From Histomonas meleagridis 2922-C6/04-290x (Eukaryota > Protista > Parabasalia): DNA of 64,000 bases. The notes under the pieces are model-generated. The model made no database searches. It was not told the DNA's origin and was given only the letters and a program-made list of their open reading frames with translations. The stretch spans positions 40,383 through 104,382 of the forward strand of contig JAANOX010000188.1 of assembly GCA_020184695.1 (NCBI GenBank), read 5' to 3'. Made by a program: the position numbers and the translations under genes. Each line of letters starts with the position of its first letter. Position 1 is the first letter of the stretch. This document shows, one piece after another, positions 5,613 to 62,192 of the stretch.

Positions 5613-6682
5613 CATTCTCATTACACATCATATCATAAACAAACAAAATCATTTATACAAAACATTCTCATTACACATTATATCATAAACAAACAAAATC
5701 ATTTATACAAAACATTCTCATTACACATTATATCATAAACAAACAAAATCATTTATACAAAACATTCTCATTACACATTATATCATAAACAAACAAAATC
5801 ATTTATACAAAACATTCTCATTACACATTATATCATAAACAAACAAATCCACTTATACAAAACATTCTCATTACACATCATATCGCAAACAAACAAAATC
5901 ATTTATACAAAACATTCTCATTACACATTATATCATAAACAAAACAAAATCATTTATACAAAACATTCTCATTACACATTATATCATAAACAAACAAAAT
6001 CATTTATACAAAACATTCTCATTACACATCATATCATAAACAAACAAAATCATTTATACAAAACATTCTCATTACACATCATATCATAAACAAACAAAAT
6101 CATTTATACAAAACATTCTCATTACACATTATATCATAAACAAACAAATCCACTTATACAAAACATTCTCATTACACATTATATCATAAACAAACAAAAT
6201 CATTTATACAAAACATTCTCATTACACATTATATCATAAACAAACAAATCCACTTATACAAAACATTCTCATTACACATCATATCGCAAACAAACAAAAT
6301 CATTTATACAAAACATTCTCATTACACATTATATCATAAACAAACAAAATCATTTATACAAAACATTCTCATTACACATTATATCATAAACAAACAAAAT
6401 CATTTATACAAAACATTCTCATTACACATCATATCATAAACAAACAAAATCATTTATACAAAACATTCTCATTACACATCATATCATAAACAAACAAAAT
6501 CATTTATACAAAACATTCTCATTACACATCATATCATAAACAAACAAATCCACTTATACAAAACATTCTCATTACACATCATATCATAAACAAACAAAAT
6601 CATTTATACAAAACATTCTCATTACACATTATATCATAAACAAACAAATCCACTTATACAAAACATTCTCATTACACATTAT
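5613..6682. repeat. 50-bp tandem minisatellite, about 21.4 copies
   Basis: Unit CATTCTCATTACACAT(T/C)ATATCATAAACAAACAAAATCATTTATACAAAA repeats with period 50 (one copy is 51). No ORF. Confidence 0.98.
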
Positions 6683-6728: not shown

Positions 6729-9479
6729 TTACTTTTCATCTTTTTCTTCCTTTCCTACGTTCAGTCTCTTCTTTATATCATGCAGCCTCATTTCCGAGTG
6801 TTTCTTGAACGCCTTTGTGAACTCTATTGATTCCTGGCTCTTGTTCTTGAACAGCCACACCAAGCAGAACTCGAACGTTTCCTTTAAGAACAAATCATTT
6901 CTGAACAACGTGTGACTTGTCTTAAATATTGTCACTATTCTACCCATTGATTGTTTCAATATTTCGATAATTTTATTATTCAAATCCTTATCATTTTGTT
7001 TCAATATTTTTGCGGTGAATTCGAATATTCTTCGTATTAAGTTATCATTATTTTTAATTATATTTGATAAAGTTTCAGATAAACTTTTGTTACATAACAT
7101 TTTATATAATGATTTCGGCTTATCAACAAAGAAGTTCAATAATATCCAAGTGTTATGTAATATTAAGAAGTCGGAATCGATTAAATGTTTTGCTATAGCG
7201 TCTGAAAATTCGGGTTTTTCTACAATTACTTTCCGTGTAGTTTCTAATGTTAAGAATACATTTATAGCTTTAATTCTTTCTTTATATAAATTATTTGGGA
7301 TTTCATGTAAATTCGATACTAAAAATCCAACTGATGAAGATAACTTTTCTAAATTTAATTTGAAATCAATGATTAATCGATCATTAATTAATATTTTACA
7401 GATTGGTATTAATAACAAAGATAAATATCGATTATTATTTTCTAATGTATTTGTCTTATGAATTACATCATTTAATAAATCACATAATTCATTACATTGG
7501 AATTGGAAATATAATGTATTACTTGTATTAATAATATGATTTAAGATTTGCGCTATAGCATATGGTATATTATATATATTATTGTTATTGTTTTGTAATA
7601 AGTTCGGTAATATTTCCCCAATTTTGGTGATGGATTTCGCAAATAAAAATGCGGCTTGATTCATACATGAACAATGTGATATTGACCAAAGTTTAGATGA
7701 ATCATTCTCTTGTGAAATCCATGTCAAAAATTCGGACCCTAATAATATCCGATGAATTCGTGTGGAATTAGAATGTAATAACATTAGAAATGATCGATAT
7801 AAATCTGTTCCTTTCTTAGATGTACGTAACTCTCGTAAAAATGTCTGATCAAATATTATAGTCGATATTTTAGATGATATAGAATGACATTGTGAATATG
7901 CTATTGTATAAAACTTTTTCCCATTGTTCTCACGGAATAATGATAAAAAGTTATCTAAGAGATAAAAGCGATTAATTAAATTAAGTTTCTCATCATTATC
8001 TTTGATGGATGGTAACATCTCAACTCGATATGGTGAAATATAATTAACTAATGATGTTAACTGATGAAAACTTCGTAAGTTTTCGGGTAAAATTATAACA
8101 TTAATCAAATCAACAGATTCTGTGGTAGTTATATATGAATTTAAGAAGTTGCCAACATGTAACTTGTCTAATAATGAACGATTAGATAATTGTAATAATC
8201 GAATTATGTTTTCACGTTTGCCAATAATCGGATCAATTAATGAGACAAATTTTTTGCCATTAACATCGAGATTTAATATCTGTGTGTACTGTGCGGTGTT
8301 CAAATTGAAGTTAAGAATCTTAAAAATACAATTTATGTTGGTATAATCTAACTGATTTGTGGTAATTAAATTTTGGACTTTGTCAATGTTCTTCTCTGGA
8401 ATACCTAATACACAGACATTAGGTTTGATGGTGGTTTGACTTTTAGTGACGGGTTCATAAAGTCCATATGCAATACTATCAGATATAAATTTAGACTTAT
8501 CAATACCAAAGACATATAAAACATGACTACAACGAAGACCATGGGTTGAAAACTCTTTGGATTTGGACCGGACTAAGGAATTTAGATTTTGGATTTTCTC
8601 CGAGATATTTGTTAAGTTAGTGACTGGTGGGATTTCATTTGCCCAAGATAGAAAGGCGGTGTCTAACACAGGATTGGAAGGTTCAAATATGTCAGCTTCT
8701 TCATCTTTGATGGGATCTAATGTGGCGACCGTTTGCATGCCCTTTGGTGGAATTGGACAAGACCTTAATGTATCATAGGTAACGTTGCACCATTTAACAT
8801 ATGCTTCTTCATATTCTTCATAAAAGTCATAAAGTATAGGATTAGGTTCAGATGCAACTAATGATGAACACCATTGATCTTGACTTGTAAGATGATGTTT
8901 AAAACATAATGGATCACGTTTGGGTACTTGTTCAGGGAAAAGTTCTTCGGGATCAATTTCATCTTTTTGATATAATTTGGTAAGCATTAATAAATAATTA
9001 CGTGGAAGAAGTTGCCATAATTCAGGTTTAAATGTCCTGAAACGACCTGGGTGCGCTTTTTCTTCTTTGGTAAAGATTTTAGGAGGTTCTGGTAAATAAA
9101 ATTCTCCTGAAATTGGAATAGGAAGTGTAACATATGAAAAATATATTGAGGCTTCCTTATACCAAAGTTCAAAAGCTTGTTTAAAGTCTTCTTTGTTTTG
9201 ATATTCTTTTGGATTTGGAAAAGAAACCAAAATTTTGTCCTGTGGTTTAAATGTTGAAGGAAAAATATCTTTAGTGAATACATCCTGAAAGTCATTAGAA
9301 TTATTTAATGCATAAACATCCCCATTAATTGGTTGGTAATATTTGTCAAGAGGTGTAAAATCACCATTAATATAATAAGGAATTTGATCACCAGAAACAT
9401 GTTCATTAGCGTCATGAGGTGGGATGTCTATGAAATCATATGTCATTTTGAGTGTTGTTTCTAATCCTTTAGTCCTCAT
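6729..9479 (-). CDS. Large hypothetical protein; Pro-rich N-terminus, helical (ARM/HEAT-like) C-terminus
   Basis: 916-aa uninterrupted ORF in AT-rich DNA with an ATG start. Confidence 0.8.
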   Translation of the reverse strand: MRTKGLETTLKMTYDFIDIPPHDANEHVSGDQIPYYINGDFTPLDKYYQPINGDVYALNNSNDFQDVFTKDIFPSTFKPQDKILVSFPNPKEYQNKEDFKQAFELWYKEASIYFSYVTLPIPISGEFYLPEPPKIFTKEEKAHPGRFRTFKPELWQLLPRNYLLMLTKLYQKDEIDPEELFPEQVPKRDPLCFKHHLTSQDQWCSSLVASEPNPILYDFYEEYEEAYVKWCNVTYDTLRSCPIPPKGMQTVATLDPIKDEEADIFEPSNPVLDTAFLSWANEIPPVTNLTNISEKIQNLNSLVRSKSKEFSTHGLRCSHVLYVFGIDKSKFISDSIAYGLYEPVTKSQTTIKPNVCVLGIPEKNIDKVQNLITTNQLDYTNINCIFKILNFNLNTAQYTQILNLDVNGKKFVSLIDPIIGKRENIIRLLQLSNRSLLDKLHVGNFLNSYITTTESVDLINVIILPENLRSFHQLTSLVNYISPYRVEMLPSIKDNDEKLNLINRFYLLDNFLSLFRENNGKKFYTIAYSQCHSISSKISTIIFDQTFLRELRTSKKGTDLYRSFLMLLHSNSTRIHRILLGSEFLTWISQENDSSKLWSISHCSCMNQAAFLFAKSITKIGEILPNLLQNNNNNIYNIPYAIAQILNHIINTSNTLYFQFQCNELCDLLNDVIHKTNTLENNNRYLSLLLIPICKILINDRLIIDFKLNLEKLSSSVGFLVSNLHEIPNNLYKERIKAINVFLTLETTRKVIVEKPEFSDAIAKHLIDSDFLILHNTWILLNFFVDKPKSLYKMLCNKSLSETLSNIIKNNDNLIRRIFEFTAKILKQNDKDLNNKIIEILKQSMGRIVTIFKTSHTLFRNDLFLKETFEFCLVWLFKNKSQESIEFTKAFKKHSEMRLHDIKKRLNVGKEEKDEK

Positions 9480-42235: not shown

Positions 42236-42438
42236 ATTTTTCAGAGAAAATGAATAGGTAATAACGTTCTAATTTTGACCACTTTTTTGTGTAAAAAAAG
42301 AAGTTTCGTTTAAAAATGAGGCACCCCAAAACGAATAAATTTATCCATAATTCACCGATATTGGTCGTTACAAAATTCAGTACTTTATAAAATCATTTGC
42401 TCATTGAAAAATTCTGTTGCCTGACGCCATTTCGAGTA

Positions 42439-43074
42439 ATGCTCTTTGTTTTACTTGCGGCATCATCCATTGCTGTTGAGTACTACGGCAATCATGGTGA
42501 AGAAAACGGTGATTTCAGCTCAATCATTTCTGCTGCTATTACTATTTTAATGTCTGATGGTGAACAATTAACTGAAATCAATTCCATTTCTGATGCTATC
42601 AAACACTGTCGTTCCGGTTGTGGTCTTGCCGTTCCAAGTGGTCCAAAACTTGTTAAAGAAATGAAGAAAGATAAGACATACATATCATTTGCTGTTGGAA
42701 AGGCATCCACTATTTACAACAAGATTGTTGAACACCTTAAGACACAAAGTGGTGCTGGTTCATTCACCCTTGAAATTCCAGCTAGCACTGTTCTCAGCTG
42801 CTTAACATTAGGTCATTACGTTCCACGTGTTTCTGTAACAGGCACTTATGGATACAAAGAAGTCAACGGCGAACAAGTGTGCACATTTTCTGCTTCTGCT
42901 AGGATTTATGGAACTGATCCATGGGATTTCGAAACACATTCTAGCTACTCATCTATCAAGAACCTCATTCTCGAAATCATCCCAAGCCTTCTTGTCAGCC
43001 TCCGCGGAAATATGAAACCATTTGACATCAACTATGAAGCAACTGAAAGTTATTATGGTCAATTCACAAAGTAA
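42439..43074 (+). CDS. Secreted protein with colicin M-like (lipid II phosphoesterase) domain motifs
   Basis: Signal-like MLFVLLAASSIA. AIKHCRSGCG, TLGHY, VTGTY, NG, RIYGTDPWDF and KPFDI appear in the same order as recalled colicin M motifs. Host-like high-expression codon bias. Confidence 0.6.
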   Translation: MLFVLLAASSIAVEYYGNHGEENGDFSSIISAAITILMSDGEQLTEINSISDAIKHCRSGCGLAVPSGPKLVKEMKKDKTYISFAVGKASTIYNKIVEHLKTQSGAGSFTLEIPASTVLSCLTLGHYVPRVSVTGTYGYKEVNGEQVCTFSASARIYGTDPWDFETHSSYSSIKNLILEIIPSLLVSLRGNMKPFDINYEATESYYGQFTK

Positions 43075-43308
43075 ACTAGCCTTTTGAGAAACATTTTTTT
43101 ATTTTTTGACATGATTTTTTTTGACTGTGATGATTTAATTCAATAAAATAAATTTTACAATTACAACAAATTTTTTGCTTAAAATGAAGCAGCACCTCTT
43201 TTACAACAAGAAATTAGTGATATTAGATGTCATATTTGAGGATAATATCGATTTTCGGTCTGAGAAATTAAACGAAGTCCTGAAAAAAAATACGTTACCA
43301 AAGCTTGG

Positions 43309-61108: not shown

Positions 61109-62192
<1,084 letters not shown>

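Follow-up and report, generated by a model that had tools for sequence, protein, structure and literature searches.

To our knowledge, no protein toxins other than the colicin M (ColM)-type enzymes are known to cut the carrier bond of lipid II, and these enzymes have been described from bacteria only. Reviews of the family list no organisms other than bacteria and give its signature as DxYD(x5)HR, in which all of the named residues are essential in ColM (PMC8469651, PMC5821083). In colicin M, the essential residues include D226, Y228, and D229 (PMC8469651). The catalytic domain of ColM is active on its own, and the lipid II chemotypes of Gram-positive bacteria are cleaved by ColM as well as by PaeM. 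A bare catalytic domain is unable to cross the Gram-negative outer membrane unaided (PMC8469651). [quoted passage not shown] It is toxic in the periplasm of E. coli, and the cells become round (PMC11148199). In our literature searches, no paper connected colicin M to Histomonas, to parabasalids, or to a transfer into eukaryotes.

The tick dae amidases are reportedly interbacterial weapon genes that a eukaryote domesticated, and they are said to have a signal peptide and to be expressed. Trichomonas has a lactococcin 972-like peptide that targets lipid II. The antibacterial toolkit of Trichomonas comprises this type of peptide together with NlpC/P60, GH19, GH25, and GH3 members, and no ColM-fold gene is listed in it (PMC12612818).

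Here, we describe a gene of Histomonas meleagridis that appears to resemble the Trichomonas toolkit in its history, because there, too, a bacterial wall-targeting gene passed to a eukaryote, where it acquired a signal peptide and is now expressed (PMC12612818). It differs from that toolkit and from the tick amidases in its protein family and in its expected chemistry, which would be cleavage of the lipid carrier bond. In contrast, their chemistry is binding or peptidoglycan hydrolysis. The gene lies in a window of 64,000 nucleotides, which is the whole stretch of DNA analyzed. A preliminary description, made from the letters of the window alone, proposed a parabasalid host, and the DNA is indeed from a published parabasalid assembly, that of H. 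meleagridis.

The gene and its transcript

The coding sequence is intronless and lies on the + strand (42439..43074), running from an ATG at 42439 to a TAA stop codon at 43072-43074 and encoding 211 amino acids. It is present as a single copy in the 43.13-Mb, 281-contig H. meleagridis assembly. A cDNA contig of run X2 spans 42429-43087 and covers the entire coding sequence with zero differences. This contig has a template-switch adapter at its 5' end and an A-rich tail at its 3' end. Because it begins at 42429, the ATG at 42439 is the first start codon of the mRNA. A mechanical list of open reading frames had offered an upstream TTG start at 42397, which is ruled out by the mRNA 5' end at 42429. 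Therefore, the 211-residue reading frame and its start are real, as first described.

The mRNA starts within an initiator-like element, CCATTT (42427..42432, + strand), which we take to be similar to the trichomonad Inr, and its 5' UTR is only 10 nt long. At the locus of an orthologue (L002), CCATTT is kept and its distance from the ATG is identical. At the other end of the gene, the stop codon lies within TAAA, presumably the trichomonad polyadenylation signal, and the poly(A) addition site follows about 13 to 17 nt on (43072..43091, + strand). The cDNA contigs of runs X2 and X4 end at 43087 and 43091, respectively. The gene is transcribed as a polyadenylated eukaryotic mRNA from a eukaryotic chromosome. 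This transcript appears to be abundant. In two further runs, presumed to be RNA, the word depth was 2351 and 1416 over the gene versus 27 and 17 over the next gene. One contig (X1) reads through from the ColM-fold gene into the next gene.

The neighboring genes are eukaryotic, and their products are a kinase, an aminotransferase-MOSC protein, and proteins of the TPR and ankyrin types. It is the TPR protein gene that lies immediately downstream, with no immunity gene there, and none would be expected in Histomonas. The reading frame is under purifying selection, with a dN/dS of 0.125 at a dS of 0.9 in comparison to the 81%-identical orthologue at L002. Its GC content is 39%, and its codon use resembles that of the host. 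Among the 28 open reading frames of at least 200 amino acids in the window, it ranks second from the top in C3 (0.24) and second from the bottom in A3 (0.27), and its G3 is low (0.08). This composition fits a host-adapted, highly expressed gene, which is how the preliminary description had read its codon bias.

Predicted export, fold, and conserved residues

The first 12 residues (MLFVLLAASSIA; 42439..42474, + strand) are a predicted signal peptide. The prediction comes from their hydrophobicity (a Kyte-Doolittle 9-residue mean of 2.57 at residue 1), and small residues occupy the -3 and -1 positions of a likely cleavage site after S-I-A. Judged by this hydrophobic N terminus only, the protein is predicted to be secreted. 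Among the 13 eukaryote-context sequences (see below), 12 have a short hydrophobic N terminus of this kind, despite differing sequences. Just 39 residues precede the toxin domain, and they consist of the 12-residue hydrophobic peptide and one helix.

That helix (residues 25 to 38) leads into a predicted ColM-fold toxin domain at approximately residues 40 to 211 (42556..43071, + strand). The AlphaFold (AF2) model had a pLDDT of 91.7 overall and above 90 from residue 30 on. When the model was compared to the PDB with Foldseek, the first 13 matches were all ColM-family chains (E values of 1.8e-4 to 2e-3, probability of approximately 1), and the best of them included colicin M, PaeM, syringacin M, and pectocins M1 and M2. 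These were followed by BtpeA-CTD and then by the first unrelated match, at an E value of 0.06 and a probability of 0.16. In an independent all-against-all search (VIA-wide), ColM-family chains were at ranks 1, 4, 5, and 6 (Z scores of 7.9 to 6.2), and BtpeA-CTD was at rank 2 (Z score of 6.9). Each of these matches aligned 141 to 158 residues, whereas unrelated rows with Z scores of at least 5 aligned no more than 106. In VIA, the part of the model that aligns with pectocin M1, PaeM, colicin M, syringacin M, and BtpeA-CTD begins at residues 24 to 45 and ends at residues 209 to 211. The structural scores were moderate, with TM scores of 0.36 to 0.48 and Z scores below 8, a range that the tool terms common. 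A bacterial RHS tip, modeled from a separate alignment, returned the same match list. Two aligners and two independently built models therefore agree, which supports a colicin M catalytic-domain fold for the Histomonas protein as predicted. The ColM-like fold named in the preliminary description is borne out in this respect: Foldseek and VIA-wide both retrieve the ColM family for the model, ColM-family chains are the top Foldseek matches, and the model of the bacterial relative concurs.

Look-alikes in the ESM Atlas included Colicin_M, DUF3289, and the toxin cargo of RHS, eCIS, and MuF proteins. DUF3289 is therefore among both the language-model and the structural look-alikes of the Histomonas protein, and it, too, is a ColM-fold toxin that was recognized by structure only (PMC11148199). 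It differs in being bacterial only, and none of 41 members of the Histomonas protein's family has a Pfam DUF3289 match. The same Pfam scan of these 41 sequences, at E values of up to 1, found no Colicin_M or DUF6402 either.

Sequence and profile comparisons did not connect the protein with colicin M. Pfam and NCBIfam scans of the 211 residues gave no match, and Colicin_M (PF14859) was absent at E values of up to 10. A six-frame search of the whole genome with PF14859 also gave no match, although this is weak evidence because 14 control genomes were equally blank. Searches of the PDB sequences with the protein (phmmer) and with the family profile returned chance matches to designed repeat proteins and no ColM chain. 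With hhalign, the family was compared to colicin M alone and to an 18-sequence ColM alignment. The motifs were placed correctly, but the P values of 0.026 to 0.18 were not significant (single-comparison values were 0.09 for full profiles and 0.026 for the domains only). Therefore, the motifs by themselves are no better than chance, and the ColM assignment rests on the fold searches. By these scans, the Histomonas protein falls outside Pfam Colicin_M, and the profile comparison with that family that the preliminary description had proposed came out negative.

The hhalign alignment pairs motif 1 of the protein, DAIKHCRSGCG (residues 52 to 62; 42592..42624, + strand), with colicin M V131-G141 (ALAHYLWGNG). 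A53, H56, and G62 are nearly invariant throughout the family, and all members of the eukaryote group have H56 and R58. The invariant positions of the colicin M counterpart are A132 and G139, with Y136 and G141 nearly so. Motif 2, TLGHY (residues 123 to 127; 42805..42819, + strand), aligns with Y195-I199 (YLGNI). Its L124 and G125 are nearly invariant, and L196 and G197 of colicin M are invariant. Motif 3, DPWDF (residues 160 to 164; 42916..42930, + strand), is the counterpart of the catalytic DKYDF of colicin M (D226-F230), with D160 paired with D226, W162 with Y228, and D163 with D229. W162 and F164 are nearly invariant in the family. D160 is kept in 10 of 13 eukaryote-group sequences and 13 of 28 others, and D163 is kept in 10 of 13 and 22 of 28. 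The acidic half of DxYD(x5)HR is thus retained, with W replacing Y. However, the His-Arg pair is missing, because D160-P-W-D163 is followed by FETHS and then by S169-Y170. The preliminary description had read both halves of this motif correctly, the acidic residues as kept and the His-Arg pair as out of register. Family conservation also defines a helix motif, N175-x3-E179-x2-P182 (residues 175 to 182; 42961..42984, + strand), in which N175 is found in 40 of 41 sequences and E179 and P182 are each found in 39. In the hhalign alignment, E179 falls on E241, a residue that is nearly invariant in colicin M, and K174 falls on R236 of the colicin M His-Arg pair (H235-R236), with N175 adjoining it.

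The Histomonas domain therefore shares with the ColM bacteriocins (PaeM, syringacin M, and pectocins M1 and M2; PF14859) a predicted catalytic-domain fold and a colinear set of positions: AxxH(Y)xxGxG, LG, Dx[YW]DF, the helix Glu, and [FY]xI in the last strand. D160 and D163 match metal-binding aspartates that are essential in ColM, PsyM, and PaeM (PMC8469651). The motif pairs that the preliminary description had listed occur in the same order in the hhalign alignment, but hhalign places the C-terminal strand two residues away from the register given there (KPFDI with KEYQI). Unlike the bacteriocins, the 211-residue protein has no Pfam match and no His-Arg pair, and the TonB box and the domains for translocation and receptor binding are missing. 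It is also a eukaryotic product, has a predicted signal peptide, and lacks a partner immunity gene.

Bacterial relatives and probable lateral origin

A phmmer search found 43 homologues, the bacterial members of which matched at E values of 1e-9 to 1e-17 with 30 to 37% identity across the whole domain. Those outside the eukaryote-context group all look bacterial, and several are C-terminal tips of RHS proteins (P0014, P0017, P0024, P0026, P0043, and others). Three of these (P0024, P0026, and P0043) have a Pfam RHS_repeat upstream of the matched region, and P0033 and P0035 carry the source annotation "RHS repeat-associated protein." By sequence, the family to which the Histomonas protein belongs is an unnamed RHS C-terminal toxin domain family that has no Pfam entry. 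A word-indexed search with its profile gave no named protein.

At two bacterial loci, L025 and L026, open reading frames of 139 and 136 amino acids (6895-7314 and 6106-6516, respectively) overlap the toxin stop codon. Their products are homologous (E value of 5e-11), and both have a signal peptide and a Cys of the lipoprotein type. These are candidate lipoprotein-type immunity genes, and this suggests that the toxin acts outside the cytoplasm.

In a phylogeny, a branch with support of 98/96 splits 13 eukaryote-context sequences, the Histomonas protein among them, from 28 others (the tree is unrooted, and a eukaryotic origin was shown for some of the contigs). With P0053 as the query, the RHS N-terminal part alone was common to gut Verrucomicrobiota (Opitutales and Puniceicoccaceae) and one Clostridia MAG. 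The toxin domain was absent from the five genomes that were searched, and a sample of 401 Verrucomicrobiota genomes yielded only four short fragments.

The bacterial RHS toxins and the Histomonas protein have equivalent invariant residues and predicted folds. They differ in architecture. In bacteria, the domain comes after RHS/YD-shell repeats, and a candidate immunity gene of the lipoprotein type lies downstream, whereas in Histomonas the domain stands alone behind a eukaryotic signal-like peptide. These comparisons support a lateral origin of the Histomonas gene from bacteria. The preliminary description had also proposed lateral acquisition, and this agrees with relatives that are RHS tips with adjoining immunity genes and with a Histomonas copy that has eukaryotic flanks, a polyadenylated transcript, and a host-like composition. 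However, it had sought the source in a colicin-type bacteriocin. That part does not hold, because the nearest relatives are RHS-type polymorphic toxins of an unnamed family and the colicin import domains are absent.

Proposed function and its alternatives

Our preferred explanation, to which we give a probability of roughly 0.58, is that the gene encodes a domesticated ColM-fold toxin domain from the tip of a bacterial RHS protein, now an exported antibacterial protein with a predicted lipid II-cleaving activity. The gene would descend from the C-terminal toxin tip of an RHS-type polymorphic toxin. In the parasite, a short hydrophobic signal-like peptide and one helix precede the toxin domain, and receptor-binding, translocation, and immunity parts are absent. 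The protein would enter the secretory pathway and be released or delivered to phagosomes. On meeting bacteria, it would cleave lipid II or a similar undecaprenyl-pyrophosphate-linked wall precursor on the outer side of their cytoplasmic membrane. Catalysis would use the conserved acidic DxWD, probably with a divalent cation. Wall synthesis would then be blocked, and bacterial killing or digestion would be aided. Here, we infer the export, the substrate, the catalytic residues, and the antibacterial role. An antibacterial weapon or a digestive tool is possible because the putatively exported protein shares the predicted shape of the wall-attacking domain of colicin M. The domain probably acts on lipid II, but its cleavage is uncertain because the His-Arg pair is missing. 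We advance more tentatively, as something that may be so, the idea that this is the first eukaryotic family of ColM-fold proteins that cleave lipid II, one domesticated by parabasalid gut protists, free of receptor and import domains, at work in phagosomes or secretions, and with an HxR formed by H56 and R58 in place of the HR of colicin M.

The missing His-Arg pair would also be expected if the protein were a ColM-fold enzyme or binder that acts on something else, with the fold kept but not the chemistry of colicin M. Its target may be polyprenyl-phosphate carriers of teichoic acid, O-antigen, or capsule, a membrane lipid, competing protists, or the bird host. In line with this, H56, R58, N175, and E179 are the RHS-tip family's own invariant residues, and profile-level similarity to ColM is lacking. 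We found no description in the literature of an activity for BtpeA-CTD, the next structural neighbor, and two ColM members with altered motifs, PmnH and PmdH, are thought to be without phosphatase activity (PMC8469651, PMC5821083). However, the acidic DxWD and the AxxH..GxG and LG positions are retained, and the candidate immunity proteins of the bacteria are lipoproteins for export, which an envelope target would predict. Furthermore, DUF3289 is equally remote from ColM and yet yields a cell wall phenotype (PMC11148199). We consider a different target to be rather unlikely, although it carries appreciable weight. The absence of HR, together with H167 in H. meleagridis at a position where the family consensus is N, could instead mark a catalytically dead remnant with a nonenzymatic role, for example as a secreted structural, adhesive, or decoy protein. 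This is improbable in view of the dN/dS of 0.125, a transcript that appears to be abundant, and the invariance or near invariance of H56, R58, N175, and E179 in the bacterial toxins and the eukaryote group alike. Such conservation of polar residues across both groups points to an active site that is probably retained.

An endogenous housekeeping role in the ER or Golgi seems more improbable still. The protein's route crosses the ER lumen, where dolichol-pyrophosphate-linked glycans are found, and hydrolysis of these lipid II-like oligosaccharides would be chemically related. A mammalian dolichol-pyrophosphate-oligosaccharide diphosphatase activity is reported to accept lipid II analogues (PMC6600155). 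However, a very patchy distribution, with one copy in H. meleagridis, and relatives that are interbacterial toxins are not what such a role would suggest. Finally, cultures of H. meleagridis contain E. coli (PMC8529796), and a chance reading frame, bacterial contamination, or an assembly chimera would all be artefacts. We give this next to no credence. It is ruled out by the polyadenylated cDNA, the eukaryotic flanks on a 188-kb contig, the GC content of 39% with host-like codons, the orthologue under purifying selection, and the 43 homologues.

If the domesticated RHS-tip explanation is true, then a eukaryotic stand-alone version of the ColM fold with a signal peptide would bring a fold and a target chemistry not yet represented among the interbacterial weapons that eukaryotes have reused. 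The Histomonas gene also reveals a bacterial RHS toxin family that has no Pfam entry and has a conserved putative lipoprotein immunity partner. Because the acidic half of the ColM signature is kept without the His-Arg pair, this family is a natural experiment on the catalytic mechanism of the ColM fold. H. meleagridis is a poultry pathogen, and its growth in vitro needs live bacteria. Therefore, an abundant secreted enzyme directed against the bacterial cell wall would be a testable link between the parasite and its microbiota. If it is a lipid II-cleaving enzyme with an active site rewired around H56 and R58, then the protein would give direct molecular access to the ways in which the parasite kills, digests, or shapes its bacterial partners.

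An expressed, single-copy gene of Histomonas

The gene of interest, for which the preliminary description proposed a laterally acquired, colicin M (ColM)-like product, runs on the forward strand from ATG 42439 to TAA 43072-43074 and encodes 211 aa. A cDNA contig from public sequencing run X2 spans 42429-43087 with zero differences from the window. Its 5' end is preceded by loose sequence, TATCAACGCAGAGTACGGGGG, which we read as the 3' portion of a cDNA template-switch adapter, and its 3' end continues into an A-rich tail. Therefore, the leader of the mRNA is 10 nt long, the first start codon in it is ATG 42439, and the poly(A) tail begins ~13-17 nt past the stop codon. An upstream TTG start (42397), taken from a mechanical ORF list, is ruled out because the cDNA begins at 42429. 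Ten nucleotides upstream of the ATG is a CCATTT element, which is kept in L002, the metagenome locus of an orthologue.

That orthologue (P0002) is 81% identical to the Histomonas protein. The two genes share 80% nucleotide identity, with dS of 0.91 and dN/dS of 0.125, and the latter indicates strong purifying selection. The gene is surrounded by ORFs for a TPR/ANAPC3-like protein, an ankyrin protein, a protein kinase, and an aminotransferase-MOSC protein. The H. meleagridis assembly (43,133,364 bases in 281 contigs), queried with both the protein and the family profile, contains one copy. Neither contamination nor a chance ORF nor a pseudogene can account for the locus. Together with the cDNA, the dN/dS and the flanks confirm the ORF at 42439-43074 as a conserved eukaryotic gene that is expressed and present in one copy.

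In two other runs, word depth was 2351 and 1416 over the gene versus 27 and 17 over the next gene, as abundant RNA would give; contig depth is a poor expression measure, and these runs are only guessed to be RNA. In run X1, a single 3313-nt contig (record 1; window 42579-43250 and beyond) links the 3' two thirds of the gene to the downstream TPR gene, which could reflect read-through transcription or DNA in that run. The two genes are on separate contigs in two other runs, with depths ~85-fold apart. Among the 28 window ORFs of at least 200 aa, this ORF ranks second from the top in C3 (0.24) and second from the bottom in A3 (0.27); its G3 is low (0.08), and its GC of 0.40 is within the host range. 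This composition is consistent with the earlier suggestion of high expression. A 315-aa ORF on the minus strand at 61109-62056 stands well above all others of the window in GC (0.49) and GC3 (0.59), and its C3 is 0.37. Such values point either to very high expression or to recent acquisition.

Fold and active site compared with colicin M

Pfam and NCBIfam scans of the 211-aa protein gave no match, Colicin_M included. We built an AlphaFold2 model from a 41-sequence family alignment (mean pLDDT 91.7, pTM 0.84). In a Foldseek search of the PDB, colicin M, syringacin M, PaeM, pectocin M1, and pectocin M2 filled ranks 1-13 (E 1.8e-4 to 2.3e-3, probability 0.99-1.00). Directly after them came BtpeA-CTD, a type VI effector domain of Bacteroides fragilis, and the next unrelated match followed a clear gap (E 0.056, probability 0.16).

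We also aligned the model, independently of Foldseek, to 48,161 representative chains (VIA-wide). Five of the top six rows were pectocin M1 (Z 7.9, 141 residues aligned), BtpeA-CTD (6.9, 145 residues), colicin M (6.7, 150 residues), PaeM (6.4, 142 residues), and syringacin M (6.2, 158 residues), these absolute Z values being in a range common for the method. Unrelated rows with Z of at least 5 aligned 106 residues or fewer. The model shows a ColM-type fold because the whole ColM family ranks first with near-complete domain coverage, not because of absolute Z. A bacterial RHS tip (P0017, residues 180-376), modeled from a separate 12-sequence alignment (pLDDT 89.8), returned the same match list. 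Therefore, the proposal of a ColM-like fold held up in both searches and in the replicate. The ESM Atlas contains the Histomonas protein. Among the entries that resemble it in features and in shape are Colicin_M and DUF3289, as well as cargo at the C-termini of RHS/YD-shell, eCIS, and MuF proteins, which are all toxin delivery contexts.

For sequence comparison, we used the cma gene of plasmid pAPEC-O1-ColBM (L016 902-1714, minus strand) as the colicin M reference and an 18-member ColM alignment. The preliminary description had paired motifs of the two proteins. Those pairs were recovered by hhalign, colinear across 135 columns and matching invariant or nearly invariant positions of both families, but the alignment was not significant (P of 0.18 for the single sequence, 0.09 for profile-profile, and 0.026 with both domain trimmed). 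A53, H56, G60, and G62 of the Histomonas protein pair with A132, H135, G139, and G141 of colicin M, L124-G125 with L196-G197, D160-x-W162-D163-F164 with D226-x-Y228-D229-F230, and E179 with E241.

The defining ColM signature is DxYD(x5)HR. Colicin M needs every one of D226, Y228, D229, H235, and R236, and the D226 equivalent binds metal in PsyM and PaeM (PMC8469651). The Histomonas protein keeps the acidic half, with W for Y. S169 and Y170 occupy the HR positions, so the His-Arg pair is indeed out of register, as first described. The family consensus there is N-x-x-Y. Polar residues particular to this family are invariant elsewhere: H56 and R58 belong to the first motif, N175 and E179 to the helix that follows the acidic one. 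H56 and R58 may stand in spatially for the HR pair. The protein falls outside the Colicin_M family as currently defined, because tests for the Pfam profile match, the His-Arg part of the signature, and the domains for import all came out negative.

Bacterial RHS toxin tips and eukaryotic relatives

We searched 1.8 billion cluster representatives exhaustively with phmmer and found 43 relatives. The more distant ones are the C-terminal ends of longer proteins. Pfam RHS repeats are present in three (P0024, P0026, and P0043), two carry the source label RHS repeat-associated (P0033 and P0035), and an RHS core-end motif is directly ahead of the domain in two (P0028 and P0039). On two long bacterial contigs, L025 and L026, the toxin gene is within an RHS/YD-shell neighborhood, and a small ORF overlaps its stop codon (L025 6895-7314 and L026 6106-6516). 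The two small ORFs are homologous to each other (28% identity, E 5e-11), and both products begin with a signal peptide and then a Cys, like lipoproteins. This arrangement is the classical toxin-immunity layout, and the small ORFs are a candidate new lipoprotein immunity family. Export of the putative immunity protein points to a site of toxin action beyond the cytoplasm. The Histomonas protein belongs to this unnamed family of RHS tips.

The RHS N-terminal part of another protein, P0053, occurs at 56-77% identity in genomes of gut Opitutales/Puniceicoccaceae, Candidatus Merdousia gallistercoris (chicken), and one Clostridia MAG (L005-L013). The toxin domain was absent from all five of these genomes searched, and only four short fragments of it were found among 401 genomes of the Verrucomicrobiota, the phylum of the Opitutales/Puniceicoccaceae. 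A shared RHS part without the toxin domain is typical of swapped, orphaned polymorphic toxin tips.

The nearest relatives (30-43% identity) are short proteins, nearly all opening with Met and 8-13 hydrophobic residues, and their neighbors are eukaryotic wherever known. P0047 is next to Vps26, Exo70, and a Utp21-type WD40 protein, and P0004 is next to a BspA-type LRR protein, an ankyrin protein, and a MatE protein. P0003 adjoins a Prp18 that matches a Histomonas ORF end to end at 52% identity. A maximum-likelihood tree separated 13 eukaryote-context sequences, including that of Histomonas, from 28 others (support 98/96). This grouping makes one old transfer into parabasalids the simplest reading, in an unrooted tree where most contigs are too short to assign. 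The claim of lateral bacterial origin was supported by the RHS-tip relatives with candidate immunity genes and by the eukaryotic flanks.

Some relatives depart from this pattern. P0003, the closest nonorthologous one (42% identity; L003 1457-2488, a eukaryote-type contig of 51.5% GC), has as called a 150-residue nonhydrophobic N-terminal extension with an internal repeat in place of a signal peptide; its start codon may be miscalled, or its targeting may differ. P0006 (400 aa, Logan contig), also in the eukaryote group, has the toxin domain at residues 44-219 and a C-terminal extension of ~180 aa with a weak, below-threshold match to the membrane-protein-like Pfam family Orf78, and it may be a membrane-anchored variant. 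Within this toxin-domain family, P0010, P0019, P0023, P0030, P0032, P0042, and P0044 make up a second clade, well supported when P0022 is counted in (100/99). Classical signal peptides and long extensions at the N-terminus occur in at least P0010 and P0023. Their contigs (L018 64-1542 and L019 179-1309) are extremely AT-rich (23.5% and 28.9% GC), contain ATT microsatellites, and look eukaryotic, perhaps from anaerobic fungi, ciliates, or amoebae. This clade could be an independent transfer.

A probable domesticated toxin domain and its proposed target

The Histomonas protein opens with the strongly hydrophobic sequence MLFVLLAASSIA, whose last residues are S-I-A. This N-terminus is probably a signal peptide, and 12 of the 13 eukaryote-context members begin in the same hydrophobic way, with differing sequences. 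The protein would then reach the medium or the phagosome and use its DxWD acidic site to attack lipid II or a related undecaprenyl-PP intermediate. By analogy, it would work most like the catalytic domain of colicin M, which is active in isolation and surpasses the full-length toxin (PMC8469651). ColM-type enzymes are lethal to any species once in the periplasm and also cleave Gram-positive lipid II chemotypes (PMC8469651). DUF3289, which has the ColM fold but does not belong to Pfam Colicin_M, shows toxicity only when periplasmic, and it then causes rounding of E. coli cells (PMC11148199). The lack of an immunity gene for the Histomonas protein would follow from its host being a eukaryote without lipid II. 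A bare catalytic domain cannot cross the Gram-negative outer membrane, and so action in phagosomes with membrane-damaging factors, or on Gram-positive bacteria, would be more plausible than long-range killing in the manner of a colicin.

We consider it very probable that the protein is a domesticated bacterial toxin domain with a ColM fold. Cleavage of lipid II as an antibacterial effector has, by analogy, about an even chance. For the full reading, a domesticated ColM-fold toxin domain of RHS origin that is exported and attacks lipid II, we estimate a probability of roughly 0.58.

The reviews of the ColM family consulted describe bacterial hosts only, and no relevant paper emerged from literature searches that paired colicin M with Histomonas, with parabasalids, or with transfer to eukaryotes. 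The recent Trichomonas catalogue of laterally acquired antibacterial genes lists NlpC/P60, GH19, GH25, GH3, and lactococcin 972-like peptides, and nothing of the ColM fold (PMC12612818). The evolutionary pattern is that of dae, a domesticated interbacterial toxin. Therefore, the ColM fold and the pattern of domestication were already known, and what is new is the family, the domain of life of its host, and the altered active-site signature.
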